Origin: Mytilus californianus
Taxonomy: Eukaryota
Assembly: GCF_021869535.1 (NCBI RefSeq)
Contig: NW_026262700.1
Span: 806,001 to 870,000 of the forward strand
Length of the DNA: 64,000 nucleotides
Reading direction: 5' to 3'
A program made the translations under genes and the position numbers. Within the stretch, counting starts at the first letter, position 1. Each line of letters opens with the position of its first letter. Shown here in pieces: positions 4,798 through 46,927 of the stretch. Below the pieces are notes generated by a model that saw only the letters and a program-made list of their open reading frames with translations, searched no databases and was not told the DNA's origin.

Positions 4798-5036
4798 CTA
4801 AAATAATAAAAAAATGAATAAAAATTTTAAAATACGAACATTTATAATTCATATCGTTTATATTGTATTGAACTATAATAAGATTTGTTTGTACAGCAGT
4901 TATTCTCTTGCTCGTATGATATCTTTTCAGTTCGCACATTTCTCATGTGAAAAGTGTCAGCTATTACTATTACAATTGCTATTGCTTTGGACTAATATGT
5001 CGGTGTTGGCTAAACTGAAACAATATCTTTGCATAC

Positions 5037-5657
5037 CTGAACTTTTCTTTGGTTAAATCTAGACTTTTAACTCTTCGTTTATTGTTTTCTATTTCTTTAA
5101 GTTTCCTTATCTCCACTTCCTTGATTCTATGAAGCATGCGCATGTCTTCCTCTTCAATGTGGCGTTTTAAATTCATAAAACGACGCTTGACATGTTCTCC
5201 TTTTTTCAACTTTTGCCATTCATCTTCTATGATACGTTTGTATATTTTTTCGAGCTTAGCATGACTTTGTAAATCGAGTTTCTGAATATTTTGGGACAGG
5301 GCGGTGTTTTGTTTCGTGATTGAATGTTCAGTTTTTCGTGACCGTTCACTTTGCCGAGATCGATTCGTATCCATTCCCAGACTACGATATGCATCTCTTC
5401 TATTTCTTTCCACATATACAGTATGCAAATGTGTTTCCAAGTTCGCCAGCGGCCCAGTCCAAAAACATTTTTTCCATTCACATCGTACAATTTTCTGGTT
5501 TATACGATCTTCTAACTCGACATTCTCACGGTAAAGTCCATCCACTCGGCACATTGGACAGGAACCATGAGAAGCTTGGTAACTCCATCTTGTTATGCAG
5601 AAATGACAAAACTGGTGACCATTTTGACACTCATGGGGCTGCCGTAAGATGTGACAA
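5037..5657 (-). CDS. RING/coiled-coil gene 1, coding exon 2 (rest of RING-HC, TRAF/SIAH-like zinc finger, coiled coil)
   Basis: Acceptor ttcttgtag|T at 5657, donor cag|gtatgc at 5037. Encodes CHILRQPHECQNGHQFCHFCITRWSYQASHGSCPMC and VRCEWKKCFWTGPLANLETHL. Confidence 0.85.
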
Positions 5658-9388: not shown

Positions 9389-10697
9389 TCAACGAATAAA
9401 GGTTGACGATTTATCAGATATATTGCCCATTAGTTTTTTGAAAGCGTCCTTGATTCTCTGTTGTTCTCGTTCTTTTGCTTCCAATTCAAATTTCAGTAAA
9501 GTCTTTGCTTTCTGTGACATTTCGGCTTCAACTTCCGGTTCCGGCTCTTTGTCGCTGATATTTTGTTTGAGTTCCTTTTTCTTCTCTCTGATATCTTGTA
9601 TCGCATCAATCATTTTATCCGTTGCCAATTCTTTCTTACTAGACATATTTCTTATTCTTTTCCACATATTTTCGTCTTCTTTCAACTTTTCCTCGTGCAA
9701 AACCCGTTGTTTTCTGAAAAATGCTAGCTTATCTTTTTCGGCTTTTAATTTAACATCGGCAATGTTTTCATGCATGTCTGATCCTAAGCCACCTTTTGAT
9801 GTTGATACGTTTGATATTCGTGATTTTAAGTTTGATATATATTCTTGTTTCCATTTTTCATCGTTTTGTCTGTGCAAAGAAAATATTTTTCTCCTTCTTT
9901 CGATTTCTTGCTTAAATTTTTCATTTCGCTGACGAAGCATCTCTCTCTGTTTAATTTTCTCACGTTCAAGGTTATTTATTCGTTCTGCAAGGAATACTGC
10001 ATCCTGTTCAAATTGGCGCTCTACACTGCGAAAGTGATGCAACGAATTTTCAAGTTTTTGTTGTCTGTTTCTGTCAATTATGTGCATGGCATGTTCTGCA
10101 TTGACGCTTGCTATGGTTTTCTGTCGTTCAAGTTCATGGACACGTTTTTCCATTGCTTCGACTTGTTCTTTATTTTTCTCTTCTCTAAATTTATTTTCTT
10201 TTTTTATTGCATTTAATTTCCTAATTGCGGATTCCATTAGCTGCTTTTCTCTCTCAAGAGCTTCATTTCGTTCCTTTTCCCTCGCTCTATGTGTACGCGT
10301 TTGAACATTCTGAATCCTTGTTGAAAGAAATTTCATTCTTTCGGCCATATCTTTCTCCATTTTCCTTATTTTCCTACTCGCTGCTTCATTACTATCTCTT
10401 TTTCTTTTTTCTAATTGGTTAATCCTCAAAGACAGAGAACTTGTATTATGTTGCTTATATCTTTCCAATCTTTTTGCACGATCTGCTAATAACTTTTTAT
10501 CTCTTTCCTCCCGTCTGGTTTTCTCAAAAGTACGATTTTTGTCTTTCCGAAATTCCTCGTCCTTTTTAATAAAATCATCAATAAGGACCAATAATGCTAA
10601 CCTATTCTTTGTTCCTATTTGCTTCCATTGTCTCTCATTTTCATGCAAAGATCGCTGTAAAAACATCGATTGTGCTTTCTTGCTTTGATGGCAAAGC
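9389..10697 (-). CDS. Large coiled-coil exon CC-A (K/E/R-rich, 18-residue repeats)
   Basis: 451-codon open frame in the ORF track; acceptor tttccctttTAG|G at 10697 (phase 2); first in-exon ATG at 10666. 18-aa register: LRINQLEKRKRDSNEAAS/RKIRKMEKDMAERMKFLS/TRIQNVQ. Confidence 0.75.
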
Positions 10698-12909
10698 CTA
10701 AAAGGGAAATATTTGATTAGATATATATATGTTGTGTATATCACTGTTTAGTTTCGACAACATTTATAACATGGAGGACAATGCTTAATGTTAGCTTGAA
10801 GTATATAAATTTGTGAGTAAAAAATCAAACTGGATAATTACTGAAAATAAACTTGAATCACCTGGTGAAAGAAGGTGTGCGTCAAAATACTGATATCTGG
10901 TACAAAAACCCTGTACAAATTATAATTTGTACGCAGTTACAACTTGTACATAACATATACATTGTTTATTTGAAAATGTTGTCTTTAGTTCGCTCATATT
11001 TATATTAACTTATATGAATAGTTACGTAAACAACATATATTCTGAACTTACATTTTATAGAATAAAAACAGTATCAACTACCAATCTATCTTAACTCACG
11101 TGCTCGTATATATGAGGACAACAAAATCGGAAATATATATTTAATTAGATTTTATGAACTACCATTATTTACTCAATGTCCAGCGGCAGATGTTTCATTG
11201 AATTTCAGAACGATATTTAAGTATCAATAAATTCAAAAGATAAGTAATAAATTGAATGTCCCTCTGGTATCTTTCGTCCCTCTTTTATAAAAAAAGAAGA
11301 CCGACTTTTCCATACATTTTTACCATATATAATGATAATAATTATGTTTTCACATGACAATTGTCGTTTTATGCGCATAAGATGGGATTATTTAACATTC
11401 TTAAAAATATCGTACAAAACACTCGGTAAAAACTTTAACCAAAAATGAAATGATTCAAATTGCAGACAGTTGCATTTTTAAAGCAGGAAAAATTAGATAA
11501 CACAACTTAACGATAAAGACAAAAAGTTAAAAAAAATCTAGTAAAACTTACCCTAATCTTAAAGATCTACTAAGTATGTAAATGACAGTCCGTGTGATTG
11601 TTTATTAATTTTAAGGTGTACAAAACACGTTTGTAATTATATTTTGTCCTTTTGTCGTAACTCAGGTCTTTTGTATATTATATTTGTTGTTTTTAAATTG
11701 AATATGTTAATGAGAAATTAAAAAAATCAAAGAACGTATTGTTTTCAAATCAAATATCTTAATAAGAATAAGAACAGTTGATTCAAATAAGCATCTGTAT
11801 CAAACCGATATTTTATCTTAAAATTTTTAATTATTCATGTCGCTATTTGTACCACCTGCCATGTTTGTTTTGTTTGTTGCTGAAATCAATAGGTATGATT
11901 TTACGTCTTAGTTTACTCTCTTTAGAAAACTTTGTTTTAAAGTCATCAATTTAGCGGAATATGTTACAGATCATATTTGAATGCTTGAAAGGGTGAAAAC
12001 TATATACTCCTGGGAACCTAGTTTGTTTTGAAACATTAGTATTCAAATAAAATCTTAATTTACCTATCTTATTCAGTTGAGCAATTTTATGATTTTTTAA
12101 ATGTCAGTTTTATCAAAGAAATTGATACAAAGTTAAATTTTAGTAGTTCTACAATTTTGTACTTGTATAAGAAAAACACATAGTACGAAAATGATTAAGT
12201 AGTAAAAAAAATATATATTTAATATTAAAAAAAGATGTGGTATGATTGGCAATGAGAAAACTCTTCACAAGACCAAATGATACCGAAATTAACAATTTAA
12301 GTTGATCGTAAGGCATTCAACAATTAGCAAAGCTTATACGGCATAGTCGGCTATAAAAGGCCCCGGAATACGAAACGTAAAACAATTCAAACGAGAAAAT
12401 AATATACAAAATTAACGAACAACAAATATGTAAGACAGCAACAAACGACAACCACTGAATTGCAGGCTCCTCATATGGGACATGCACATACATGTACATA
12501 CACAATGTTATATATAGCTACAAAAAATATTACAGTTTATCCCATTTCTTGATATTTTGAAAACTCATATTGTACATATTACGAAATATGTGAATGATGA
12601 TTTCTTTTGTGAAGAAAAATATTTATCAAATTGTTTACATTTTCAATTTGACAATAGTTCATCACCATAAATAAAGTGATCTATACTAATATTCTGTAGT
12701 AAAACAAAACTCTTACAAACGAAATTATCATAATTATTTCCCTTGATGTGATTTAATTGAGTATATGCGTTTGTAAATGTAGTTATTCACTTAAATCAGT
12801 AAAGTATGCGATAAATTGAGCTTCTTCTCGTTTTGTTACTTACAATGTGTTCAATTTACACGTTTCTCTATCATTATGTAAGAATAAATGTTAAATCATT
12901 ACACATTAT

Positions 12910-12965
12910 ATGTTAATATATTTGCTGGTTTCTATATGTGTATTCGTAATGTATACATATATAAA
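12910..12965 (+). promoter_or_regulatory. Putative type-3 Pol III promoter of ncRNA-1 (PSE-like motif plus TATA)
   Basis: ATGTTAATATA at 12910 (about -79) and TATATAAA at 12958-12965 (about -31) relative to the stem start at 12989; same spacing at the two paralogues. Confidence 0.6.
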
Positions 12966-12988
12966 CATATCCAAAGCATGTTTCAATT

Positions 12989-13261
12989 GGAGATTGAAAG
13001 AACTGTGTCTACAGAGCGGTTACTTGGATGTGTTGGTGTTTAACAAAACGTTTAGCAAAACGTTTATTACACTACGATACACATGTGTACTGAAATTGAA
13101 AGGCGACAAGGCAACTTTCAACATTAAGCAGAGAAATACATATATGTCTCCGATCAAAGGTACATTGCAACTACAAGCAGACGTATGCTACAGTTATAAG
13201 ACAGTGAATGCCAAAGCTTCGCAAGGTCATACTGAGACACGGTGATTTCAAATCTTCTTTT
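12989..13261 (+). ncRNA. Putative structured ncRNA-1 (about 270 nt), unidentified family
   Basis: 5' arm GGAGATTGAAAGAACTGTGTCT (12989-13010) pairs with 3' arm AGACACGGTGATTTCAAATCTTC (13235-13257), including G-U pairs; TTTT at 13258-13261; internal hairpins such as TTGAAAG 13096 / CTTTCAA 13115. Confidence 0.65.
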
Positions 13262-13879
13262 ATTTCGGGAAAAAAACGTGATGAAATTTAAACAAATGTA
13301 TATAGTTCTATACATTTAACCATACAGTTATATGACATTCTTATACAATACTAGTTGATCCTTTATGTAGTTACTGTTGTTTTGTATAATAAAAAAGGCA
13401 ACTTATGCCCAACTATATTTTCAAACTCTATTTCTCCGTCCAAACATGTTTCGAAACGATAGTATGTTTTATACACTACATGTACGTTAACGGATATCAT
13501 TTCTGTTTATTTATTTTATATATGAATGTCATTGCGGAAATGAAAACACACATTACTATTTTCGATTGCGAGATGTTATAAGTACTACAACTGTTCTATA
13601 TATGGATTGATACGTATCAATAGAGATGACAAGGATATTGTGTATAATGACGAACTAACTAACGAAAGCTTAATATGACGAATTGTACGAAACGGGAGCT
13701 GCTAATGAATACATTGGACACACAAACTCTGATTTAAATTTAGTAATTTTCATCGTTTGCATGTAGTTTAAAGAAGATAATACCTATATCTATATATGAT
13801 TCCTCACATAAATAGTTCAATGTTTTCCACAATAGCAAATGATGCACTTGATATCCCAGACTTTTTTTGACAATATATT

Positions 13880-14165
13880 CATAAAAAGTGAAATAACAAA
13901 AATACCGAACTCCAAGGCAATTTCTAAACGAAAATTCAAAAGGCAAATGACAAAAAAATCAAAAGCTCAAACACATCAAATGAATAACAACTGTCATATT
14001 CTTGACTTCTTACCGGCTTTTCATATTAAGAAAATGGTGGATTAAACCTGGTTTTATAACTAGCTATACCTCTCACTTCTATGACAGCAATTTAAAAATC
14101 CATATTATTCACAACGATGTTTGAACAAAAACAAACAGACATGATAGGTAAAAATGTCAAAATTA
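13880..14165 (-). repeat. Interspersed repeat family B, reverse orientation
   Basis: Reverse complement of the ...AGAGGTTTAGCTAGCTATAAAACCAGGTT...AAGAAAATG... element at about 17960-18200, 24545-24810 and 34200-34565. Confidence 0.65.
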
Positions 14166-14609
14166 TAAGATTGATGATCAATGCATACATAACTTAACGA
14201 AATTGTGGAAACTTTTAAAAAGTTAGGAAAAATCTAATTATGATTTGGTCTATTTCTTTTAGGAGTAGGAAACATCTGAGTTTCTCTTAGTTATTCTGCG
14301 TCCCTACCTTGAGGAAGGCAAATAAATTCAAAAGACATGAAATGTTCAACCCTAACCCTACCCAATCATCAAATCGTCTAAATGATCAATCATATTATTT
14401 GCTTTCCGAGTGTTTTAAGAAATCAATGCTATTGTAAATACATTTACTAATTATTTAAGATTTTATCAAACAAACCATGCCAGAAGAAGCATGTTGCGGT
14501 CCATAAATATTTCCTAAAGGAACGGGTCATTAGAGTTAATAAATTTGAATCCTATTCAGTATGGCTAGAGGTATAGGGGGATGGTTTATATCTCAAAAAC
14601 ATGTTTAAC

Positions 14610-14897
14610 CCCCGCCGCATATTTGCACCTGTACCAAGTCAGGAGCCTCTGGCTTTTGTCAGTCTTGTATGATTTTTAATTTTAGTTTTTGTGAATAATT
14701 CAGAGTTTAGTATGTCGTCCATTATCACTGAACTAATATACATATTATGTGTTTAGGGGCCAGCTGATGGACGCCTCCGGGTGCGGGAGTTTCTATCGCT
14801 TCATTGAAGACCCATTAGTTGCCTTTGGCTGTTGTGTGCTCTATGGTCGGATTGTTGTCTCTTCGACACATTCCCCATGTCCATTCTCAATTTTATT
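14610..14897 (-). repeat. Interspersed repeat, reverse copy of the 2758-3040 element
   Basis: Ends ...GACACATTCCCCATGTCCATTCTCAATTTTAT, the near reverse complement of ATAAAATTGAAAATGGAAATAGGGAATGTGTC at 2758; partial copy at about 30680-30777. Confidence 0.7.
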
Positions 14898-16216
14898 AAT
14901 CATTGCATCTCTTCTCTTAATATCCAAACTTAAAAATGTTGTTCTAGTAATGGATATAAAAATAAGGGGTTGTAAGTCTAACAGATTTTACTCAAAACAA
15001 TGTACGGCATAAGTAGTGGTGATACATATACTTAGTGGTATAAACATAGAAAATCCAATATTCTAATACATAATGATAATCTAAAAATAATTATAAAAAA
15101 GGAAAAAAAGGCTGGTGTACCCGACAAGCGCATGTGGTCTTTTTGACATGAATATTTTTTCTTTTAAATAGTAGAACGTCTTTATACAAAACCAGTTATG
15201 CATTTTGTCTAGGAAACTTCAATAACAAAATTATTCATTCACTCTTATGACCAGGCTTTTACACTAAAATAGTTGCCAAGATTAGAAGTTGACAGATATG
15301 ATAAAGAACTATTTGCAACAGAAATCATTTTTTATTTGAAACAAAACCTTTTTGATTCTTTTTTTTTCTTTTTTAAACGGAGATATTTGTTTGTCTGAAT
15401 CTTGAATACCTAAATGAAAATACAGAGCAAGCATACGATCCAACAAGAATAAAGTTATAAATTATTTCTGCATTCATATTTGATTGAACATTGCACAATT
15501 CATCGATGCACTCGAATATTCATATAAGTGATGTACATTTTATTTGAAATCAACAGTTGCAAACAACAACATTCTATCGTAAGAAAAGTAACACGTTCTG
15601 AAACTTTTAAACGTCTTATTTTATGCTGTCCACTCAGATATACCCTTTAACTCATTTATTGTCGTATAGATATCTATTGTCATTTTATTGTCCATGTCAA
15701 TCATGGATAATAAATACAATACAATACAGTTGTTACCTGAGAGGGAGTATCTCAAAGATTATCTCAATTCAAAATATTTTTACACCTTTTGCAGGATCAT
15801 AAAATAAATGCCAATACAAATCCAAATGGTATTTTGTCTTATTGAAACACAATATGCATTCAACTTTTATGCATGCCAGGCCTCAAAACTTTTTAAACTG
15901 CACAAGTTAGTATGTACACAGAGTAGATTTTCAGCACTTTTTGTCCATTTGTTATGATGAACCTCTAATTCGTTCGTCAATATCGTGGTGATCTCTACTA
16001 TAAGAAAGCTCCATTTGAAATGAACTGTATTGATTGACATGTACAATAGAGAAACTAAACATACCTGACAATAATTGGTGATTTTTTAAACAGTGTCATT
16101 AAGCAGAACATATCAAGTGAAACTCAACTGTTTGGAAATTTAATCATCTTTTGAGATCAAAAACAAAGTGCAGTGCAAAATCCCAAATACTCCAGTGGAC
16201 TACGTTTGTTTCGAAC

Positions 16217-16585
16217 ACTATTACCCGAGTTAAAATCTTAAATTATCTACAATGTACTGTCTCCGCTAATTATCTAAATAACGTGTTATAGTGATCTTTC
16301 AATTCTCGTTGTAAATTGTTGCTTTTATTGTTTAATCCATTTTGGTGGTGTCATTTGACGTGGCTCTGTACTTATACATTCCGTCATTGTGTTATTATAC
16401 TATTACCCGAGTTAAAATCTTAAATTATCTACAATGTACTGTCTCCGCTAATTATCTAAATAACGTGTTATAGTGATCTTTCAATTCTCGTTGTAAATTG
16501 TTGCTTTTATTGTTTAATCCATTTTGGTGGTGTCATTTGACGTGGCTCTGTACTTATACATTCCGTCATTGTGTTATTATACTAT
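16217..16585. repeat. Apparently perfect tandem duplication of a 182-bp unit
   Basis: ACTATTACCCGAGTT...GTGTTATTAT at 16217-16398 and again at 16399-16580. Confidence 0.95.
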
Positions 16586-16717
16586 GGTATATTTGTGTAT
16601 TCTTGTCTTTCGTTTTTGCTATTGTGTTTTGCTTATATGCCTTTATTTTTGAAAATATTGGTTTATTTTTATAGTGATTACAATTATGACACTGTTTTGA
16701 CTGCTGTACCCCTTATA

Positions 16718-17940
16718 GAAGTCGGTCATTTAAAGATGTATCAACTGTATCATATACGTTGACGTATACGCATCTGAAAATATACCAAAAAATAGTATGT
16801 GATCCCGAGCTTTATTTGTATATACTTTCAATAATGCAGATGAGCAACTGATTAATTTCTAATGATAGTACTAATATTTAATTGTGTAGCTGACTTAATT
16901 TTTGGAAAACTTCTTGAATGTGTTTACTTCAATTTCATATGATTTAAATGTCGTTTACTATATGGATTGATGGATATGAAACGTAACGCTATAATGTGTA
17001 TAACATTATTGACAGACATATATTCAAAGATATAAAACACATAGGCATCTTTTGTCAGGATTAGGACAGTGTGAAATTGTGCAGTCAAATCTTATGAAAT
17101 CTAGTCTTGTAATAACTTGTGAACATCCCAAGAAGATCTATAAAAATTTTGTTTTCATTCAAACATATCGATGTGCAGAATATTCACGATGTATACATTT
17201 CATCTTTACGGGCTTTAGAAACAGGACAAATATCGATATCATGGCTTATCTGGTTTTCTCCCGTTTCCATGTATTGATTTTTATTCCTTCTAAATTATAT
17301 CCCTTTCGGGTAAAATAAGCTTATACGTAAATTTCACTTGAACTGATTTCATATTAATAGCTGCACGTGAAACACATGTACATGATATTTTTTCACGTGA
17401 AATTTACTTGAAAATAATTAGGAAATATCGAGTTTTTGTGGAACATGTAACCTACTTTTAAAGTTATTCGAATACTTAGTACAGTTAACAGGCATGATAG
17501 GAGTGAATACGGTGAAGACAGTATATGTATCTATTAATCATTTATGAGAAAATCGCAAAGGAACAATATTCATAGTTCCTTACATGTATATAAGTAATAC
17601 ATTTGATTTTTTGTGTTTATTTGGGTAAGATCTTGCAATATTTTAACGTGTTTTATAAAAGCATTTTGTACTAAACTCGTGTCACTGCCCCACATTCGCT
17701 CCTTTTCAAGAGCATGTAGAAGTCGTTGATATACCCTCTTTTTTGCAAAACACCATTATTGCTAATATTAAAAGTTTGTGTTTGATTGTTTTGAATAGGA
17801 TCCAATTAGATTAAAAAAAAAATAAGCACAACGTATAATAGTCTTCAGCTCGGGATCACATAATATTTTTTGGTATATATGTAGATGCGTATACATCAAC
17901 GTATATGATACGGTTGATACGTTTTTAAATGACCGACCTC
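16718..17940. mobile_element. Non-autonomous DNA transposon, TIRs of about 90 bp, TA target duplication, nested in a family-B repeat
   Basis: TA|GAAGTCGGTCATTTAAAGATGTATCAAC...GATCCCGAGCT mirrors AGCTCGGGATC...TTTAAATGACCGACCTC|TA. Rejoining the flanks restores the sequence seen uninterrupted at about 34262. Confidence 0.85.
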
Positions 17941-19466
17941 TATTATTGGCATTTTTACCTAATATGTCTTTGTATTTTGTTCACGCATTGTTGTTAATGT
18001 AATAGAGTTTTATTTTAAAGTAAGAGGTTTAGCTAGCTATACAACCCCGTTCAATCCACCATTTGATACACAAGAAAATGCCTGTACCGAGTTCGGGATA
18101 TGGCAGTTGTTTTTCCATCCATTTAATGAGTTTAGGTTTTTTGATTTTTGCCATTTCATGAGAGACTTTCCGTTTGGACTTTTTTTCTGAGTCCGGTTCA
18201 TCATGGAATCATTGAAGATGTGTGGCCAGCAGGAGTTAATCGTTCAAAGCATTGACATGCATGTGTTTATTTATTTATCTATAAACTCAATATTCAGCCG
18301 AGGATAACATGAATTTGACTTTCAATATTTTGGTAATCCTTTAGACTCTCTTTCATTGTTCGAACGACATGCATCGATTGTTATTAAGTAAATACCTATC
18401 TAGTTCTTATGCTATTTTACACAATATTTCTTAGGCCAGACTAGACCGAGTTGTCCGTTAGATTTACAAGGCGATGCTGGAGGACACAAAATGATCATTT
18501 AAAATTCACTTATTTTGCTTTAGTCCTTTCAAATTTGCGTTTCTTAAAGTTAGATTTCTTCTAAATTTAATATATATGATTTAATGGTGTCAATTTATTT
18601 GATTAAACACTTAAAATGATTAGAAATCATACTTAAAACACATTTTTGTTGCTGATCAGACAAAAATTAAAAACAGAAGTGTTTAAACTGAACATCTCTC
18701 TTCAATAACATTATTTTGAATTTTAAAACAAAACATAACTAATCCGTATACATAAAAAATGCATGAATTTCCCTAGCTATTCATGTACCCGGTAATATAT
18801 AAAGATAGTAGTCATCCTGAGCTATAAATACCTTTATGTACAGGTATCAATAAACAGGTTAGAACCAGTCACTCAAATGTTCAAACCAGTAGTTATATTC
18901 ATATCACATTATTAAATCAGCCATCCAGTCATAGCAATACATCAGTACGTTGAAATTATGAAAACCTTAAAACCATATTAAGGCCTTTTACTCTTCCTTC
19001 GTGTATTTTTTTATCGTTACATTATATTTCCCTATGCATTTGTTTGCCAATAAAAATTATCCCAACACTATTCAATTATAATTGTTTTCAAAAAAACATA
19101 TAGTAAGAAGATAATTTATCAGCAAAAAAAGATTTTTACAAAAATATATTACAGTTTAAAACACAATTTCCAAATATTTAGACTCTGTTTGTAAAATTCA
19201 TATTGTATAAAATAAAAATATATATGTGACTTGATATTTCTTTTGTGAATACCACAGGTAAAAAAAAATCTTTAAAACAAATTAACAGAATTACCTCCCG
19301 TGATATGCATTAATTTAGAATATTGGTTTGTGATCGGAGTTATTTACTTTAATCAATGGAATATGCGATACATTGAGCTTGTTCTCGTTTTGTTGCTTAA
19401 ACAATACACAAGTTACACGTTTATTTATTTTCAGGATAGTATAAATGTAAAATCAATTTATAATAT

Positions 19467-19523
19467 ATGGTAATATAATCCCTGGGTTTCAAAATTTCTA
19501 TTCGTTATGTATACTTATATATA
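19467..19523 (+). promoter_or_regulatory. Putative type-3 Pol III promoter of ncRNA-2
   Basis: ATGGTAATATA at 19467 (about -80) and TATATATA at 19516-19523 (about -31). Confidence 0.6.
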
Positions 19524-19546
19524 CATTTCCATCGCTGAAGTTAAGT

Positions 19547-19726
19547 GGAGATTGAAGGAACTGTGGCTAAAAGTTCACCGATAATAAGGTTGTTGATATG
19601 GTCATGAACATGTTGCAACATGCGGCGACATCTCAGATAATGCGCAATCTGAGTGCAGTTATTGCGGGCGTAGGCTAAACTATTGCACGAAAAACTTAGC
19701 CACGGTAATTTCAGATCTTCTTTTTT
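19547..19726 (+). ncRNA. Putative structured ncRNA-2 (about 178 nt), paralogue of ncRNA-1
   Basis: 5' arm GGAGATTGAAGGAACTGTGGCTAA (19547-19570) pairs with TTAGCCACGGTAATTTCAGATCTTC (19696-19720); T6 at 19721-19726; internal hairpins CATGTTGCAACATG (19609) and CTCAGAT-N8-ATCTGAG (19632-19653). Confidence 0.65.
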
Positions 19727-20704
19727 CGTCAGAGAAACGTTATATTAACAAATCTAAAGTCACCATGTATAATTGCCACGGGAAATTGGATTCACATGAT
19801 ACAAGAAGATAGGAGAAAAATTGTAAACCAGGTACGAAGTTTTTTAACATGTTCAATCTAAACCATTTTAACTGTTTTTTCTGCATTTACCGCTTATGAA
19901 ACGATTTTCAGATATATAGTGCCTGAAGTTTTTTTGCCAACCAGTAGCAAACAATGACAAATTTTCTGTTAGACTCCAAAACATTGCACTTGGTATCAAA
20001 AGTATTTCCGGACAGCGTCTTGTAATATACTGTGATGTAAAGGGGTACTTACTATATAATGAATAATAACAAAGATGATATGATGTCCATATCAATGCGT
20101 TACCAGCTACCAAATTGACGAAGTTAACCATCCAAATTATTTTGGCTTATAATTCCGATCAAGCTGGTGTTAGGGACCGTCATAAACTTGCAGTAAAGTG
20201 AGAGTTTATTATTTTTATTTTTTTATCCGTGATGAAGACTTAACGATGAATTCAAGATGAAAAACAGCAACAAACGCGTTGTTCCTTTGCTCTTTGTTGG
20301 TTTTATGTGTGCTAGTTAAACATAAATCATTTAGTCAGTTCCTGATAAGAGAACTTGCCCTTTAGTGACTTATTTTTGCGTTTTTGTCTTTTATCTGAAA
20401 AAAAATAATAAATAGATTAGAAACTTTGACAATAAAAAAAAACTGTAAGACATGTTCAACATAAAATTCAAATTGCTGAAATCGTCAGTTCACTCCGTAT
20501 AGGAGTTACCACCCTTAAATGACGGTTTTCTATTTGTTTTTTTGCTTTTGCCTTTAACTTAAAAAAAATATGATATAATTCTATAGTTACAAGCCTCTAA
20601 ATAATGGATGGCTATGAAAAAAATCTAGAAAAATGTTTTCGTCAATTCAAATTCAAAAAAAAAATATTTTCGTTGTCACACATTTCACAAAACAAGTATC
20701 TTAA

Positions 20705-21093
20705 GGATGTTTGCTTGTCATGTTTTGGAATTTTTGTCAGATTTTCGAAATCCTCTGGTTTTATCCATTTGAATGCCTTAAAAAAATTTGCCCATGGACC
20801 CCCATTTTTCTTTTTATAAATCTTTTACATGAATAATTATAAGCCATTTGTAAAAGTCTTACAAAATCTTATTTATTTTTTAATAGTTTTTGAGAACTTT
20901 AACTGGTCAATGATAAAGCTATGAAAAATCAAATGAGAACATTTTCCCGCCAAAATTCCAATGGCTAATATCTCGAAAACAAGCACATTGGCCCCTATAT
21001 TTTTTGACTTTTTTGATTCCTCAATTAATCCCCTATCAATATATACTAGTGTTATGGAAAGCTATCTATTTTGAAACTGAGCAGCGAACTTCC
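20705..21093. mobile_element. Non-autonomous Kolobok-like DNA transposon (TTAA target duplication)
   Basis: TTAA|GGATGTTTGCT...AGCGAACTTCC|TTAA; about 390 bp; second copy at 40488-40877. Confidence 0.8.
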
Positions 21094-22936
21094 TTAAACC
21101 GTTATGTGCAGTTCTTAACGCAAATAAGTTCCATTTAAATACCATATTTTCAATACATATATTTTATTAGACCTGACCTTGCGGTCATAACAGTTCGAGC
21201 ATAATTATTGCAATCAGACTTGAGAATTCAAAAATACTGGATTTGATGCTTCGAGTACAAATTTTGTAATCTGTACTCAGAGACAAGTTTTATCTGCTTG
21301 AACATTTTTACTTCAGATATTAGTTTTGTTTTTTTTAGTTTTCGTGGCTTTAATGATTGCATTATATAGCGAATACACATACATTTTTAGACTCACTAAT
21401 TTTTTTTTCATATGTTTTTTTATTACAAAAAATTACCTTGGTTTCATTTCATGTTGATGTTTGACTACTCATTAGTATTTGTATTTTCTTTTTGGTCAGT
21501 TATTTTATAAAATAGGTAAAATCGCGAAACAATAACGAATTTCAGGTGTGATCGTTGCCCCTTAATATATAGCAAATGCCAATATTATCAACCAAAGCTA
21601 CAAGAACTCAGAAATAAGATTAAGAGTGATAATGGTAAATGTAAGAAATAATTCCTTCATGGCATGATTCATGTTCATTTTACATAAGATCGTCAATATA
21701 TTTATTCCGAAAGCAAGTTTTTGCAGTGGAACAAAGAAACAGCTGAAATAACTGTTTTAAGAGGAATAAATAATTCCAGCTATAAGGTCAAAGTTTAATG
21801 TATTATCGTCTGATAATATTTCAGTCGGCGATTGTATGTAGAAAGCCGAATTTCTATTGAGTGGTCCCGCAGTTCATGTCGCTGCATTCGGAAAAATTTT
21901 GGCAATACCGATTACGGGAAGACATTATTCAATAGCATTATGTTTGTTAAGATTGTAATTAGATAAAGGATTCTAATTTCAAAAGTCTATGTACAATTGT
22001 TTCACAGTAAAACTAAGTCATTCAAGTATGAAAACATTTTGTTCACCTATAAGAGGAAAACAACGCAACAACAGAAACACTGAAATGCAACAAAAACTAA
22101 CAACAATGCAACACACATAGGAACGAACTATAAGATAACAACTGCCATACTCCTGACCTGGTACAGGTAATAATATAATTGTATACCATAAGCCAATGAG
22201 GAAATTAGGATTTCTTAAGTACAAAAAAGTGTATCGATTCAGTATCTTTTAACTTTTTAGTTAAGTCAAAATCATAAATAAAGGATTCTAATTACAAAAG
22301 TCAAAGTACAATTGTTTTATAGTAAAACTAAATCATTCAAGTATAAAAACATTGTGTTCATTTTGAAGTGTCATATGACGCTATAGGAACTAAGATTACA
22401 AAAAAATATATGACTAGATATCATTTGATAATGTTTAATAGCAGATATGGGATAACTGACATCTGTGGGGAAACACCTTAATAATGTTAAAAACAATGTT
22501 GGCAGAATTCGTTATAGCAAATCTATTATTAAAAGTATGTATCTTCAAATATACTATTGGTGTTGCTTGAGGACATTCAATTGTACTATGCGTTCTTTTT
22601 TGAAGGCCATATAATTGTATATCCCGTCATGATGAGGAAATTTTGATTTCGTATGTAAAAAACGTATCGACTAAGTATCATTTAACTTTTTAGTTACTTC
22701 AATATCATAAATAAACACGCCATATTTTTAATTGTAAACAAAAGAATTAAAAAAAAAATGATTTTCGCCCTTAATGAGTTTTAATTTAATTTTTTCATAT
22801 TTTTGTTAGGAAAACTTTATAACTGAATTGTATGATTTAGGCTCGTTCTTTTCTATTTTTGTCTCGTTTTCAATGATATACTATTGTCTTCTTTCTTTTA
22901 GTTTTGATAAAATGTTGGAAAAGTATTACCCGTGAT

Positions 22937-22992
22937 ATGGTAATATAAATCAAAGGCTTGATGAATTTATTCATAGTATTTACCTATATATA
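22937..22992 (+). promoter_or_regulatory. Putative type-3 Pol III promoter of ncRNA-3
   Basis: ATGGTAATATA at 22937 (about -79) and TATATATA at 22985-22992 (about -31). Confidence 0.55.
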
Positions 22993-23015
22993 GTTTTCAA
23001 TATAAACTACTAGTT

Positions 23016-23307
23016 GAGATTTAAATCACCATGTCTATGGTCTATGACATACTAATGGTGGCTCCACGATAACAAGCATCCAAGCCTCTGTTTCGAGATT
23101 GGGTGTGATACTAAGATGAGTCGCAGGTGGTTTAAATGTATGACATATGAATCTGCAAGCACAATGCCACCCTCCTGTAGATTGATTTGTTAGACAAAGA
23201 AATCACTTATCGAGATCCAGTACATGTAACTATAGATGTAACGCGGTATTCATCTGGTGCGGAGAACTGAATTTTACTGAGACCTGGTGATTTCAAATCT
23301 TCGTTTT
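23016..23307 (+). ncRNA. Putative structured ncRNA-3 (about 290 nt), paralogue of ncRNA-1 and -2
   Basis: 5' arm GAGATTTAAATCACCATGTCT (23016-23036) pairs with AGACCTGGTGATTTCAAATCTT (23280-23301); TTTT at 23304-23307; several internal hairpins. Confidence 0.6.
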
Positions 23308-24544: not shown

Positions 24545-24810
24545 ATGTTTGTTTGTTTTGTTCCCACATTGTTGTCAATATTATGGAATATTATGCAACT
24601 GTCATGCAAGTAAGAGATTAAGCTAGTTTTAAACCCAGGTTTTATCCACCATTTTCTACTTAAGAAAATGTCTGTACCAAGTCAGGAATATGACAGTTGG
24701 AATGCATGCGTTTGATGTGTTTGAGCTTTTGATTTTGCCATTATATTAGAGACTTTTCTTTTTGAATTTTCCTCTTAATTCGGTATTTTTGTTATTGAAT
24801 TTTGTACCTG
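24545..24810 (+). repeat. Interspersed repeat family B
   Basis: Aligns by eye with 34300-34565 (GTCAATA..ATGGAA...CCAGGTT..ATCCACCATTTTCTAC.TAAGAAAATGTCTG). Confidence 0.7.
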
Positions 24811-26210: not shown

Positions 26211-28568
26211 TTATGCTACTGATATGTCTGTACTGCTAGTCTTCATCATTTTATCTATCCTTCGTTGTACCTCTGATATTCTTTGATCCACTAGAAACAT
26301 GCTGGGATAACTATTTACAGAGAGATTTGTTCTTGGTTTTATTGGAACAGTTAGTTTTTGTCTCCTTTCACGACGGTCTTCTATGGTGGAACGCTTAACA
26401 TTCTCCATTTCGTTATTTTGCAACGTAACTCTCGTTATTTGTTCTACAGTGGTTGTTTTTGGATCCTCTTTTGTGTTAGGATTCCGAAAACCTTCTTCTA
26501 CTTCAGCCGATTTACCAAAGCGATGTTCTGTTTTGGTGTCATTTTCAAGTTCTTTTATTCTAGTCTTTAGTGACACTTTTGTATTGACTGCCCCTGTTCC
26601 CATCTCCGGTGGTTTAACCTGAGTTTTGTCTACAAGAAGTACATTTTTAGTAGTGGGGAGGTTCGGTACATAATCATTCGTTGTCTTTTTATCTGTTTTC
26701 TCCTTGTTTTTACTCTCGGTTTCATCGTCTCCCGTTCGTTTCGGCTTTTTAACTGTAGAAAATAGAAACTCGTAACGTTCTTTCTGATCGTTACTCTTTA
26801 AAATTTGCCCTTCTTTCATTTTTGAACATTGATTGTTAAATTTTGCATTTTCCTCGTTATATTTGTCACTCTTCGGTTCTATACCTGTCGTTAGTGATTG
26901 TTTGCTCTCTGTAAACTTGTTTTCGAAATGGACAGTTTTATTTGTTATACTATCTTTCGCGATTGAGAGAGGCTTAATACCCATAATTTCCTCAACTTCC
27001 GGTTGTCTGAGTTCAAGACTTTTTGGAATCAGCGGGTCAGATAATGTGATAATTTGTTTCCTCTCTTGTAAACGGTTTAGTGAGTTGAAATTACCAGTAG
27101 GTGTTTGAGTTAAATTTGGTTTAATTTGTCCAGGTTTTGATGTGTCCGTTCGACGTGAATTGTTTGTACGGACGGCATGATTGTACATTTGAATTGGGTT
27201 TTCGTTTAATTTCGTTGGTTTTTCTGCAATATCCTCTATTTTTGTTGCTTCTGATTTCTGTTCAAATTCTACTTTGGGATTCTTCGTTTGTTTCATAGAA
27301 GTATTTTGATCGGAATGATTGTTTATTCTGTTATCTTTACGGAGATTGTTGGTATTATTACTACTTTTTTGTCTTTGCGTTTCTGTGTTTTGTTGTGTTT
27401 TACCAAATTCCGCTTTGTTTGTAACGCTATCGACTTTGTTGAGATGAAAAGTTGTACTGACGTCCGTATCGGTTTTTCTAAAGGTGTTTAGGGTTGTTTG
27501 TTTTACTGCATAATTATTCTTTTGTGGAACATAAAAACGTTGAAACCGTTCTGAGTTGGAACGTCGCACTATATCTGTCTGTGACGTAAATTGTTCTGAT
27601 TTTACAACGGGTTTAGTAATACGTTGTTTTTTTGCGCCTATTCTAGGTGTAATTTTCTTTTTGCCTACGTCAAGTAAAATAGGATCTTCTTCGTTTACAG
27701 TGGACAAAATCGTCTTGACAACGCGATTATTTATTGCCTTTTTGTTCATGTTTTTATGCAATTGATCTTTTCCACTAAGATATGTCTTGTTTTCCCATTC
27801 TACCTCAACCTTTCGTTGAGATTTATAAACTTTATTGCCCTCTCCTTGTTTTGACTTTTCAAGCGACTGTTTTTTCTTCTCAACTGTCTTTCGTCCAATT
27901 TCCCAAAGCTTTTTACCAGATACTTTCTTCCCACTTTCAATTCGTCTTGCGGCCAGAAGTTTGTGTTGCCAAATCATACGCTCCTGTACAATCTTCTTCT
28001 CAATGTATGATATTCTGCGTTCAGCTTTTACAATATCTTTATTTCTTTCCTGTTCAGCGGTTGTAACTCTGCGCATAAACAGCTTCCGGTCCTCCGCGTG
28101 TTTCTTTTCTATTGTTTTAATTCGTTTTTTCGTCTCCTCTTTTGACTTTTCCGCTCTTTTTTCGATATTCTCTATATTTTTGGCAATTATCTTTGATTCC
28201 TTTTTAATGTGTTCTTCCATCTGTCTTGTGCTCCTATTAGAAAGAGAAGAACTCAGTCTTTTCCTTTCCTCAATTTTTCGTTCTCTTAACTTCAATTTTT
28301 TCTTGTTTGATATTTTCTCTTTTTCGATATTTTGAACATACATTTCCATCAGTTCTTCGTCTTTTTTCATTCTCTCCTTCTCTTGCTCTTTCCAAGCTTT
28401 TTCTTTTCTTTCAGCAATTTCTCTTTTATGTAGTTCCTCTTGTCTGATATTCCAGGCTATACAAGCTTGGAAAATTTGTCGTTCCTTCTCTGTCTGTTTT
28501 TTGCGCTCTTCAATTTTCTTACGGTACAAAATGTCAACAGCATTACCCATGGCAGCTTTTCTATCCAC
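26211..28568 (-). CDS. Large coiled-coil plus low-complexity exon CC-B (first ATG at 28550, 779 aa)
   Basis: 785-codon open frame; probable acceptor ttttcgacag| at 28619. N-terminal 18-aa repeats (KNIENIE.../KRIKTIE.../RRVTTAE.../RRISYIE...ERMIW), then a T/N/K-rich disordered tail. Confidence 0.8.
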   Translation of the reverse strand: MDRKAAMGNAVDILYRKKIEERKKQTEKERQIFQACIAWNIRQEELHKREIAERKEKAWKEQEKERMKKDEELMEMYVQNIEKEKISNKKKLKLRERKIEERKRLSSSLSNRSTRQMEEHIKKESKIIAKNIENIEKRAEKSKEETKKRIKTIEKKHAEDRKLFMRRVTTAEQERNKDIVKAERRISYIEKKIVQERMIWQHKLLAARRIESGKKVSGKKLWEIGRKTVEKKKQSLEKSKQGEGNKVYKSQRKVEVEWENKTYLSGKDQLHKNMNKKAINNRVVKTILSTVNEEDPILLDVGKKKITPRIGAKKQRITKPVVKSEQFTSQTDIVRRSNSERFQRFYVPQKNNYAVKQTTLNTFRKTDTDVSTTFHLNKVDSVTNKAEFGKTQQNTETQRQKSSNNTNNLRKDNRINNHSDQNTSMKQTKNPKVEFEQKSEATKIEDIAEKPTKLNENPIQMYNHAVRTNNSRRTDTSKPGQIKPNLTQTPTGNFNSLNRLQERKQIITLSDPLIPKSLELRQPEVEEIMGIKPLSIAKDSITNKTVHFENKFTESKQSLTTGIEPKSDKYNEENAKFNNQCSKMKEGQILKSNDQKERYEFLFSTVKKPKRTGDDETESKNKEKTDKKTTNDYVPNLPTTKNVLLVDKTQVKPPEMGTGAVNTKVSLKTRIKELENDTKTEHRFGKSAEVEEGFRNPNTKEDPKTTTVEQITRVTLQNNEMENVKRSTIEDRRERRQKLTVPIKPRTNLSVNSYPSMFLVDQRISEVQRRIDKMMKTSSTDISVA

Positions 28569-37088: not shown

Positions 37089-38022
37089 TTGCCTAACAAT
37101 GTAATTTTAACACACTATTTAGTATGTAAATATAAGAATGTTTAAAATATTTACAAAATGATGAAAATAAACGCAATATTTCGCTAGACTAACTAGCTTT
37201 ATCAAGCGTGCATCTATCAAGGTGAAATCGGATGTAGATGATAAGAAACTTTTGCAGCTCAATGTATATGTTGCACTTGAATTTAGCTGCCTTGAAAATA
37301 ATACATAATTTGGATGAAGTTCAAGATTTTTACAAAATTGGTAGTTGAAGTTAGCAACGTCCATTGGCCAATATTACAGGATAAAAAGGACGATGCTGTG
37401 TACTAAATTATTCTTTATCTTTCCTGTATCTTTTCTCATCTTTTTCGTTAAGACCATCAGGTTCTAAAGTGTGGAGTTGGTGGATCCAAAAATTTTCTCT
37501 TCTCCTTCTCGCCGTGGTGTCCCACTCGGTATTGACTTCTATGATTTGGAAGGTAACATTATCAAAAGAATGTTTCGTTGAACGAAGATGTCTTGTGAGA
37601 GGACAGTTTTTGTTGGTTTTGTACCATGAACGATGGTTATTGAGCCGAATATTAAATTTGTCCATTGTTTCTCCCACATACTGAATGCCACATGTGTCAC
37701 ATGTTAATATATAAATTGAGTTCTCCGTTTTACAGTTGGAATTTGAGTAGATGGTATAATTTTGTTTAGTAACGGAGCTGATGAAAGAACTGCTTGTATT
37801 GGCAGCTTTACAACACAAGCAGTTCCTTCGACCACATTGTTTGTAGCAACCGGGAGATGGAGTAGGCTGCTTTGCTAATACAGATGATCTAAATACAGCT
37901 TGATAAAGCTAGTTAGTCTAGCGAAATATTGCGTTTATTTTCATCATTTTGTAAATATTTTAAACATTCTTATATTTACATACTAAATAGTGTGTTAAAA
38001 TTACATTGTTAGGCAATCTATA
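37082..38022 (-). mobile_element. 5'-truncated Penelope-like retroelement with an inverted copy of its 3' terminus
   Basis: 37082-37206 and 37899-38022 are about 125-bp inverted repeats enclosing a GIY-YIG frame; the left end abuts (TA)n. Confidence 0.85.
37408..37897 (-). CDS. GIY-YIG endonuclease domain with upstream Cys-rich linker (Penelope-like ORF C-terminus, no RT)
   Basis: PGCYKQCGRRNCLCC...NSIYILTCDTCGIQYVGET...RLNNHRS...RRRRENFWIHQLHTLEPDGLN. Confidence 0.9.
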
Positions 38023-45447: not shown

Positions 45448-46324
45448 CTGAAATACGTAATATAAGGTATTTAAAGTATTAGTAACTGTTTTATCTTTAT
45501 GTATAGGAGTATACACAATTTGAATACTTTTTTCCCAAGTCTTCTCGAAATGGGGTGTTAAATCGGAGGATTCGTGTTGTGAGAGTGTCACCTTGCTAGA
45601 CGTTAAGGGACCTCAGTGGCCTAGTGGTCTAAGTCGTTCATATCCTTAAACCATAGCCTGTCAACATTACATATATCGAGTCAATTACCAATCCTCCATT
45701 GTGTGATACCTAATCACTTGATATAACTAAACAACGCAATTTATAAGACTAACACATCGCTTGTCACATGTGAAGCAGGATCTGAAGTGGGGTTGCTCAG
45801 TCTTTAGTTTTCTATGTTGTGTTTTGCAGAGTGCTTTTTGTCTTTTGGTAGTTTTTCGTTTTTTTGCTATGGCTTTGTTAATATAAAAAAGAAGATGTGG
45901 TATGATTGCCAATGATACAACTCTCCACAAGAGACCAAATGACACAGCAATTAACAACTATAGGTCACCGTACGGCCTTCAACAATGAGCAAAGCCCATA
46001 CCGCATGTAAGTTTATCTTCGAATTATGAGTTTGAATATCCCTTTATTATCTCATGCCTCTCTTTTAATTAACCGATTCATTGTTTTATTTTTTCGATTC
46101 CTAAATAAACAAGAAATATTTGTCCCTGAACGTTATGCACGAAACTTGCAATCGCAATCGTCTAAGAAAATTAATATACCAATGATCAATAGTTCTTCAA
46201 AGGAATAGCATTTGATCATATACTTTTGTAAGATCGCCGTATGATTTAATGTTGCTTTTCATACACGTTTTTATCAAATCATAAACTATAATACGATGAA
46301 GTAACCATGGTAAATAAATCTGAC

Positions 46325-46927
46325 CTTTTTTTCTGCTTGACATTTTCAATATCTTCCAGTTTTTGATAGAAGTTCCCTCTGTTAGTATGTGCTTGTTGCA
46401 ATGCAATCGCAGGCAATTTGTCCGTTTTCCTGTCGGTTATATCCGTAAGTGGTCGGTAATAGTCGGAACGAGAAGTGTTTGATTCTAAAGGAGGTAACGT
46501 CTGTGCGCTTTGCCTATCTAACACATTTTGTCTCTTAATCTTTTCCATCTTTTTTATCCGACGTTGGACAACCTCCTTTTTCAAATGGTGTATTTTGTCA
46601 ACCTCCTTAGCTACTTTGTGATATTCTATTCGGTCGTCAGTTGATAACGTGTCTCTCTCGGTACTAACGCTGGATTCTGACGAATGGTGAGAATCGGCAA
46701 CATGATGTTTAAGCCTTTCAAGTCTACCTTTCCATGCACACATAGAAGACTCGCATCGTACATATTTGCTCTCTATTTTATTTCTCAAATCAGTATTATC
46801 ACTGTACGTAGCCTGTGCTCCACAGGTAGGGCACGTTTTGTTCCCCCGTCTAGTCCATTCTTTGACGCATGACAAGCAATATACATGTCCGTTACAACAT
46901 TGTTGGGGTTGATTCAGAATTAATCGA
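46325..46927 (-). CDS. RING/coiled-coil gene 2, coding exon 2
   Basis: Acceptor ttttcag|T at 46927, at the same RING position as gene 1; RLILNQPQQCCNGHVYCLSCVKEW...CPTC and VRCESSMCAWKGRLERLKHH. Donor AG|gtcaga at 46325 is a weaker match. Confidence 0.8.

Follow-up and report, generated by a model that had tools for sequence, protein, structure and literature searches.

Putative Pol III type-3 non-coding RNA genes with a structured closing helix in the Mytilus lineage

Y RNAs and nematode sbRNAs are the closest described systems, in which paralogues clustered on one strand are transcribed from an upstream Pol III promoter into RNAs whose ends form a helix with a small bulge, followed by a variable loop and an oligo-U tail. 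Y RNAs are about 100 ± 20 nt in size, and their Ro60 site, conserved in sequence, comprises a 7-bp helix and a single bulged C that faces a three-base bulge in the other strand (PMC4726728). Vault RNAs combine a terminal helix and a variable centre with small tandem clusters, an upstream TATA box and internal A/B boxes. The U6, 7SK, RNase MRP and H1 genes have a TATA box at about −30, boxes farther upstream, no internal promoter and a T-run terminator. Lineage-restricted Pol III RNAs are represented by snaR, BC200, BC1, the 4.5S RNAs and the Dictyostelium class I RNAs, which are young, clade-specific, multi-copy and fast-evolving outside a short conserved stem or motif; those of known origin derive from tRNA, 7SL or Alu. 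Dicer-type release of small RNAs has been reported for vault RNA, VA RNA and some viral Pol III hairpins. To our knowledge, almost nothing is known about mollusc Pol III ncRNAs beyond the universal ones.

In this study, a window of 64,000 nucleotides of Mytilus californianus DNA was analysed, in which three plus-strand cassettes, namely, c1 (12989-13261), c2 (19547-19726) and c3 (23015-23307), share a 3' motif, a complementary 5' arm and a T run. We consider that the cassettes are probably paralogous ncRNA genes of the Mytilus lineage, most likely of Pol III type 3, with a structured closing helix; transcription, RNA ends and polymerase are deduced here from the sequence. The best reading is that of a lineage-specific, apparently undescribed family of structured RNAs, which has the build of a Y or vault RNA and belongs to neither. 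Their upstream TATA box, farther upstream boxes, lack of an internal promoter and T-run terminator resemble the U6, 7SK, RNase MRP and H1 genes, whereas the RNA bodies are unrelated to these (no Rfam match). They resemble the lineage-restricted Pol III RNAs in being young, clade-specific, multi-copy and fast-evolving outside the conserved stem, but have no sequence relationship with them and no detectable parent.

The original prediction had placed the cassettes outside known families, and this position was maintained: Rfam 15 gave no match at gathering score, nor did single cassettes match at E ≤ 10. Nothing relevant was found by Rfam in the whole window, in the six orthologous loci, in the 10.9-kb region at E ≤ 10, or in c1 and c2 alone with lax filters, and 7SK, RNase P/MRP, SRP, U6/U6atac and telomerase RNA had no Rfam match. 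Telomerase RNA was also rejected on its template, since no copy carries a CCCTAA-repeat stretch of at least 8 nt and thus none has a TTAGGG template. A tRNA scan found none. A coding gene was likewise rejected; just one long ORF is present (111 aa, 12910-13245), which lacks a homologue and whose frame is disrupted in the M. edulis orthologue, and no conserved ORF was detected across the cassettes. Searching metagenome, viral and prokaryotic collections (mussel genomes not included) for the 3' motif plus T run yielded 37 chance matches in bacterial-type DNA, with no 5' arm.

Cassettes with putative promoters and terminators

The 3' motif GGTRATTTCARATCTTC occurs exactly three times on the plus strand of the window (13241, 19704 and 23286), with a shuffle expectation of 0.07 and three occurrences reached in 0 of 100 shuffles. 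Each 3' arm pairs with its own 5' arm, as had been claimed, and this helix closes the minimum-free-energy fold of the whole cassette in c1, c2 and c3, with fold z-scores versus dinucleotide shuffles of −3.3, −4.6 and −3.2, respectively. The predicted c1 RNA (269 nt plus UUUU) has its 5' arm at 12989-13010, its 3' arm at 13235-13257 and the T run at 13258-13261. The predicted c2 RNA (174 nt plus U6) has these elements at 19547-19568, 19698-19720 and 19721-19726, and the predicted c3 RNA (288 nt plus GUUUU) at 23015-23036, 23280-23302 and 23304-23307, all on the plus strand. The lengths given earlier (about 270, 178 and 290 nt) are correct, and the T run reported after each stem is present as TTTT (c1), TTTTTT (c2) and (G)TTTT (c3). 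Gene bodies have a GC content of 39-43% versus 24-33% in the flanks. Other genuine repeat families lie near the cassettes.

The same upstream layout precedes c1, c2 and c3 at fixed spacing, consisting of TATGGTAATATA at about −80, a second box and TATATAWA. The c1 promoter block (12879..12988, plus strand) is conserved across the three window copies and the mussel copies, and contains a PSE-like box TATGTTAATATA (12909-12920), box 2 TATTCGTAATGTATAC (12941-12956) and the TATA box TATATAAA (12958-12965, −31 to −24). The c2 block (19437..19546, plus strand) contains TATGGTAATATA at 19466-19477, box 2 at 19499-19514 and TATATATA at 19516-19523; the c3 block (22905..23014, plus strand) contains TATGGTAATATA at 22936-22947, box 2 TATTCATAGTATTTAC at 22968-22983 and TATATATA at 22985-22992. 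TATATAWA lies at −31 to −24 in c1 and c2 and at −30 to −23 in c3, and was found in 12 of the 14 promoters listed. The upstream boxes (−80 to −69 and −51 to −36) keep their spacing in at least 13 mussel copies, and the upstream box starts 79-81 nt 5' of GGAGATT in 12 of the 13 copies checked. A promoter HMM matched cassette promoters only in 240 kb of mussel DNA. In type-3 Pol III genes, SNAPc binds a proximal sequence element (PSE) placed at a constant distance 5' of the TATA box; the boxes seen here are candidates for such an element, and Rfam identified no U6 or 7SK gene in 196 kb whose promoter could be compared with them. Internal box A or B sequences within two mismatches were absent from 11 of 13 copies, and both together were found in none.

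A T4-T8 run lies at most 1 nt from the stem end in all 13 copies. TTTT occurs at 2.4 per kb inside the genes versus 25.3 per kb in the window, being about 10-fold rarer inside (AAAA, 8.2 per kb), and as few TTTT were obtained in just 2 of 500 shuffles. No copy has T5 inside the gene, and internal TTTT is present in six of 13 copies, one or two each, including one at 23272 in c3 (plus strand). A TATA box about 25-30 nt ahead of the start site and a T-run terminator with few internal T runs are features of type-3 Pol III genes. Pol III would transcribe the cassettes from a purely upstream type-3 (U6-like) promoter formed by the TATA box and two boxes farther up, starting at the G of GGAGAUU and stopping at the T4-T6 run directly after the last paired base. 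The U tail would then be expected to bind La, and the terminal helix may shield both RNA ends.

Closing helix and evolution of the cluster

The closing helix was aligned for 13 complete members from six mussel genomes. The first ~22 nt pair with the last ~23 nt in each predicted RNA, leaving the short U tail as a 3' overhang, and the 22-pair helix has 87% canonical cells versus 33-51% in slid registers. It is ordered as a 7-bp terminal segment, a one-base bulge, 4 bp, a 2×2 G-A/A-G loop and 9 bp; two Watson–Crick pairs replace the 2×2 loop in the c3 type. The terminal segment contains an invariant G2-U wobble, the first seven bases (GGAGAUU) are nearly invariant, and conservation is symmetrical, falling on the 7 nt that open the 5' arm and the 7 nt that end the 3' arm. 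The 3' strand carries the single bulge, either A or C, and no three-base bulge faces it. At pairs 17-19/402-404, the seven copies of the c1 and c2 types have GUG/CAC and the M. californianus copy has GUG/CAU; the five c3-type copies all have AUG/CCU, which contains a U-C mismatch.

The arm changes quoted in the original prediction are real: pair 20-401 changes from U-A to G-C in c2, and pairs 17-404 and 16-405 change from G-C to A-U and from U-G to C-G in c3. Its argument for selection on an RNA stem, and not a decaying DNA terminal repeat, gained support from the retention of the helix in the 13 members of six genomes, with two-sided changes at five pairs. The covariation score was reached by none of 1000 column shuffles, and the shuffle statistics overstate the significance because the members are related. 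Independent compensatory events number approximately four or five versus approximately a dozen pair-breaking events. The remark that other differences become G-U on the plus strand was also borne out, with 28 G-U and four A-C cells across the members. Compensatory changes, this G-U strand bias and the strand-specific depletion of T runs therefore indicate selection on a plus-strand transcript.

The cluster is flanked by the same pair of genes in M. edulis, M. galloprovincialis, M. trossulus, M. coruscus and M. californianus; the copies are orthologous in position and on the same strand in the six genomes, and all copies within 240 kb of mussel DNA belong to one syntenic cluster. Orthologues are found for c1 in M. 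edulis (locus L043, 7370-7112), for c2 in M. galloprovincialis (locus L041, 20257-20075) and for c3 in M. edulis, M. galloprovincialis, M. trossulus and M. coruscus. The predicted RNAs of the 13 copies are about 174-358 nt long. Several copies are truncated or degenerate: in M. trossulus this applies to c2 (truncated; locus L039, 16801 onward) and to c3 in its 3' part, in M. galloprovincialis to c1, and in M. coruscus to a second copy. Constraint is thus weak, and individual genes can be dispensed with. The cluster would have evolved by local duplication, decay and loss.

The interiors had been described as variable, and their Smith–Waterman scores indeed equal those of shuffles; they are not all unalignable, however, since a c1-type profile can be aligned with c2 over its final ~68 nt (E 1e-9), extending ~40 nt past the arm. 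Profiles revealed one 3' module common to the c1 and c2 types and another common to the c3 type and the M. californianus copy, and no interior k-mer is common to all copies. The c1/c2 and c3 subfamilies have diverged past detection beyond the promoter boxes and arms. Among close orthologues, the interiors (0.77-0.89) are no better conserved than the flanks (0.76-0.93). The interiors had no match outside the cassettes in 240 kb of mussel DNA, and thus gave no sign of capture from, or antisense to, neighbouring sequence.

Alternative explanations

Release of small RNAs is an unlikely alternative, in which the cassettes would be Pol III-driven precursors and Dicer would cut the ~22-bp terminal helix, thereby freeing conserved ~22-nt arm species. 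The 22-23-nt arms, paired 5' end and short 3' overhang suit a Dicer/exportin-5 substrate, and the start sequence is nearly invariant; however, the symmetry of conservation across the arms is not the focus on the seed region of one strand, the helix is interrupted by a bulge and an internal loop, and a triphosphate would be present at the 5' end. In the literature searched, neither the arm sequences nor anything relevant on mussel Pol III RNAs was found.

Enlarged mollusc Y RNAs or sbRNA homologues, with Ro60 bound through the terminal helix, are quite improbable. The resemblance had been pointed out in the original prediction, and it stands for the layout, in that the cassettes combine a type-3 promoter, a same-strand paralogue cluster, an end-to-end helix, a variable loop and a U tail; it fails for membership in Rfam, in size and at the Ro60 site. 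Rfam gave neither a Y_RNA nor an sbRNA match, even when single cassettes were searched at E ≤ 10 with relaxed filters, and the cassettes (174-358 nt) are two to three times longer than Y RNAs. A one-base bulge follows the 7-bp terminal helix as in the Ro60 site, but this bulge (A or C) lies in the 3' strand, the combination of a bulged C facing three bulged bases is lacking, and the helix sequence bears no relation to that site. The GUG/CAC (or CAU) trio of the upper helix, which recalls the A/GUG-CAC/U motif in the upper stem of Y RNAs, is present in only part of the family (eight of 13 copies) and broken by the U-C mismatch in every c3-type copy. UUAUC is found in the loop of four of five c3-type copies; in AU-rich RNA this long, motifs of only 3-5 nt should arise by chance.

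We give similarly little credence to locally duplicated promoter-like DNA that is untranscribed or yields transcriptional noise, its stem being kept by chance or recent common descent. Interiors that evolve like flanks among close species and the decay of several copies agree with this explanation. However, the compensatory changes, the G-U strand bias and the T-run depletion each demand selection on a plus-strand transcript, and outside the promoter boxes and arms c1/c2 and c3 have diverged past detection.

Non-autonomous DNA transposons (MITE or foldback elements), of which the closing stem would be the terminal inverted repeats, are very improbable. The arms are imperfect ~22-nt inverted repeats flanking a variable interior, those of c3 are nearly perfect (5' end versus own 3' end, 90% over 21 nt), and real repeat families occur nearby. 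Nevertheless, no target-site duplication lies beside the arms and the flanks differ (for example, AATT...TTTT and AAGT...TTTT). Homology passes the repeat ends by ~110 nt upstream and ~25 nt downstream, and the duplicated unit is therefore not bounded by the repeats; for c1/c2 the upstream homology reaches ~450 nt, with 12555..12931 (plus strand) 74-78% identical to 19188-19488 and this extension absent from c3. In addition, copy positions are orthologous on the same strand in six genomes, the arms differ by compensatory changes or by changes that give G-U pairs on the plus strand alone (28 to 4), and a T run always follows the right arm. In 240 kb of mussel DNA, no further copies occur outside the cluster, and the copies lie at syntenic, not dispersed, positions.

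Vault RNA homology is the most remote of these explanations: the terminal helix with a variable centre, the small same-strand cluster, the upstream TATA box and the c1-type AGCGGTTACTT, which we take to resemble the box A region of human vault RNA, agree with it, but that 11-nt resemblance is restricted to the c1 subfamily, 11 of 13 copies have neither box A nor box B within two mismatches and none has both, Rfam gave no Vault match, and the cassettes exceed vault RNAs two- to fourfold in length.

Implications for mussel RNA biology

For the paralogous Pol III-type genes preferred here, the conserved helix would serve as the place where a specific protein docks and the interior would drift or diversify, as in a Y- or vault-like scaffold, and the helix with its 3' overhang resembles an exportin-5 minihelix. 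A more specific proposal, which we put forward tentatively as a minor possibility, is an undescribed mytilid class of RNP RNAs, in which the conserved helix with its invariant G-U wobble and bulge would be the handle for a dedicated protein and would display interchangeable, fast-evolving interior modules. This protein could be Ro60-like, La-related, or a dsRNA-binding or innate-immune protein. Mussel genomes are well known for presence/absence variation, and gene gain and loss in the cluster might track such variation or an arms race.

The family can be defined from sequence alone by its promoter, start, stop and covariation-supported helix, and its orthologues in at least six mussel genomes make gene birth and death visible. 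It thereby provides a concrete set of predicted ~175-360-nt RNAs to seek in mussels, a Pol III promoter that is a candidate for strong expression of guide RNAs or hairpins in bivalves, and a test case for the origin of new families of structured RNA. Should the terminal helix prove to bind Ro60 or an immune sensor, the family would provide a link to Y-like RNAs outside vertebrates and nematodes.

Cassettes and closing helix

The 17-nt motif GGTRATTTCARATCTTC occurred three times on the plus strand of the window (13241, 19704 and 23286), against 0.07 matches expected from dinucleotide shuffles. These occurrences belong to three cassettes, namely, c1 (12989–13261), c2 (19547–19726) and c3 (23015–23307). 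As read from the sequence, each motif forms the 3′ side of a helix, the 5′ side of which lies 175–290 nt upstream (12989–13010, 19547–19568 and 23015–23036, respectively), and TTTT, TTTTTT or GTTTT, depending on the cassette, directly follows the motif. Whole-cassette RNA folding yielded minimum-free-energy structures closed by exactly this arm–arm helix in all three cases, with z-scores of − 3.3, − 4.6 and − 3.2 for c1, c2 and c3, respectively. The GC content was 39–43% in cassette bodies versus 24–33% in the flanks and 31.7% in the window. The original prediction of three cassettes with a common 3′ motif, a pairing 5′ arm of their own and a T run was confirmed by the motif count, the shuffles and the folding.

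Thirteen complete members were aligned, and pairs were scored in the 22-pair register of c1; every arm base change quoted in the prediction was found in this alignment. Standard pairs filled 87% of cells, versus 33–51% when the 3′ partner was slid by 1–3 columns, and five pairs were changed on both sides (8–413, 12–409, 15–406, 17–404 and 20–401). The observed covariation score and fraction paired were reached in 0/1000 column shuffles, and the number of doubly changed pairs was matched in 6/1000, figures that overstate independence because the members are related by descent. Counting by eye gave four or five compensatory events that are independent of one another and roughly a dozen that break a pair, many of the latter in copies of decayed appearance; several copies of the family are decaying. 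G–U or U–G cells numbered 28, versus 4 A–C cells; the closing helix can form only from the plus strand. A G2–U420 wobble was present in 13/13 copies. RNAalifold retained the helix both for the c3 orthologues and for the c1-type paralogues, and added a few more compensatory changes in a long c3 hairpin. The pairing across thirteen members, the double changes and the excess of G–U over A–C cells support selection on an RNA stem rather than a decaying DNA terminal inverted repeat (TIR).

Putative promoter and terminator

Alignment of copies with their flanks revealed approximately 110 nt of upstream sequence common to c1, c2 and c3. Each cassette carries a TATGGTAATATA box whose start lies 79–81 nt ahead of the first G, another box (TATTCRTARTRTATAC) at − 51 to − 36, and a TATA box, TATATAWA, at − 31 to − 24. 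A promoter HMM built from cassette copies matched only cassette promoters in 240 kb, and no internal A or B boxes were found in the cassettes. The T run began at most 1 nt from the stem end in 13/13 copies. Within gene bodies, TTTT occurred 8 times in 3.3 kb (2.4 per kb, versus 25.3 per kb in the window), a count as low as this being obtained in 2/500 composition-matched shuffles, and T5 was absent from the gene bodies of every copy. The same 3.3 kb contained 27 AAAA, so the depletion of T runs is strand-specific. Several features, namely, the TATA position, the fixed upstream boxes, the lack of A/B boxes, the T run and the T-run depletion, fit a putative upstream-promoter (type-3) Pol III gene on the plus strand. 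The aligned sequences show that the promoter is conserved, that the start and stop positions are fixed and that compensatory changes have kept the helix paired.

The approximately 25 nt that follow the terminator (13258–13285 in c1) are likewise conserved in c1- and c2-type copies (TTTTATTTCG..AAAAATAAACGTT); this T-rich and then A-rich stretch could fold into a weak hairpin or serve as a back-up terminator.

Distribution and divergence in Mytilus

The cluster is flanked by two intronless minus-strand ORFs without Pfam domains, of 451 aa (9389–10744) and 785 aa (26211–28568). Orthologues of both were found only in Mytilus (M. edulis, M. galloprovincialis, M. trossulus, M. coruscus and M. californianus), with 76–90% protein identity; their automatically assigned names include CFAP58-like and ‘repetitive organellar protein-like’. 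These ORFs were used as synteny anchors, and 10 kb either side of the orthologues was examined. Cassettes were present at the orthologous loci, with their strand relative to the flanking genes unchanged: c1 in M. edulis and in M. galloprovincialis, where a poly-T tract and unrelated sequence break up the copy; c2 in M. galloprovincialis and, shortened, in M. trossulus; and c3 in M. edulis, M. galloprovincialis, M. trossulus and M. coruscus. At the M. trossulus locus (L039, minus strand), c2 (from 16801) ends after approximately 90 nt, c3 has lost approximately 33 nt of interior adjoining the 3′ arm, and the two are only approximately 480 nt apart (16801–16500 and 16321–16067), which suggests a deletion-prone cluster. 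Additional paralogues occur in M. edulis and M. coruscus, and M. californianus has one 358-nt member and one copy reduced to its 5′ arm. A degenerate c3-like copy in M. coruscus (L042, ~ 21400–21830, minus strand) has lost its TATA box and contains approximately four tandem copies of the interior segment GAGTCCACGATAATAAGCATCCACTGATACTGGGATGAG.

Between the window and close orthologues, interior identity was 0.77–0.89 and flank identity about equal (0.76–0.93), with 0.87–1.00 for the arms and 0.78–0.94 for the promoter block. Only the comparison with the more distant M. coruscus placed the c3 interior (0.88) clearly above the flanks (0.45–0.80), where flank alignment partly failed. Pairwise Smith–Waterman scores of interiors between subfamilies equalled shuffle scores, and interior sequences had no matches outside cassettes in 240 kb of mussel DNA. 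Profiles showed that the c1 type and c2 have approximately 40 nt of interior in common, which adjoins the 3′ arm and forms a CAGUU/AACUG helix plus hairpin; that the 3′ half of the c3 type is common to the M. californianus copy; and that c1/c2 and c3 have the arms alone in common. These comparisons indicate that constraint acts on the arms and promoter and is weak in the interior. Divergence between c1 and c2 is far greater in the interiors than in the upstream DNA common to both (approximately 450 nt, 74–78% identity), which suggests either that the upstream block is subject to constraint or gene conversion, or that indels have remodelled the interiors.

Other features were observed around the cassettes. 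Between c1 and c2, a 182-nt unit is perfectly duplicated in tandem (16217–16580; two copies with 100% identity). An inverted repeat with 97-nt arms (16715–16811 and 17847–17943; 91% complementary, 1035 nt apart) could represent a TIR element or a foldback insertion. Dispersed repeats of approximately 100–250 nt in both orientations (13882–14165, 18018–18197, 22135–22167 and 24556–24806; 72–94% identity) are probably a SINE or MITE family unrelated to the RNA genes. Elsewhere on the minus strand, the ORF at 37408–37818 has a GIY-YIG nuclease domain (E 3.5e-7), a domain that occurs in Penelope-like retroelements, and those at 46279–46941 and 4979–5554 have weak RING/Sina zinc-finger matches (SIAH- or TRAF-like), below Pfam cut-offs except for one borderline zf-C3HC4 match.

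Identity of the family

No tRNA genes or Rfam families were found in the whole window, and searches at E ≤ 10 of a 10.9-kb region, and with lax filters of c1 and c2 individually, returned only chance-level matches to unrelated families. Y and vault RNAs resemble the proposed cassette RNA in layout, an analogy rather than evidence of homology. Membership in the Y RNA, sbRNA or vault families was rejected on unmatched models and wrong size; the Ro60-type double bulge of Y RNA/sbRNA and the A/B boxes of vault RNAs are absent, and the short motifs GUG/CAC and UUAUC are each limited to part of the cassette family. The predicted placement outside known families, with a likeness to Y RNA/sbRNA in layout only, was supported. 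A MITE, which the prediction had listed among the outcomes that would count against it, was rejected: no target-site duplication was seen, homology runs past both ‘repeats’, the copies in 240 kb of mussel DNA are syntenic and the helix is workable only as plus-strand RNA. Protein coding was also rejected, the sole long ORF (111 aa from ATG, 12910–13245, plus strand, through the c1 promoter and body) being a chance ORF because no homologue was found among 5.8 billion proteins and the M. edulis orthologue contains stops and frameshifts. Telomerase RNA was rejected, as no template was found.

Under the proposed mechanism, Pol III would transcribe the cassettes and La would bind the U tail. The stem of > 14 bp, with its paired 5′ end and short 3′ overhang, would form an end-protecting, exportin-5-competent platform, and a specific protein may read the invariant terminal 7 bp, the G–U wobble and the adjacent bulge, with the interiors serving as variable passengers or adaptors. 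The cassette family is clearly delimited and seems not to have been described before, as it has no entry in Rfam 15 and no account was found in the literature searched. Pol III RNAs that are specific to one clade are well known, and on present comparisons the candidate genes are best regarded as a new family, restricted to one lineage, of the upstream-promoter Pol III structured RNAs, which are a known class.
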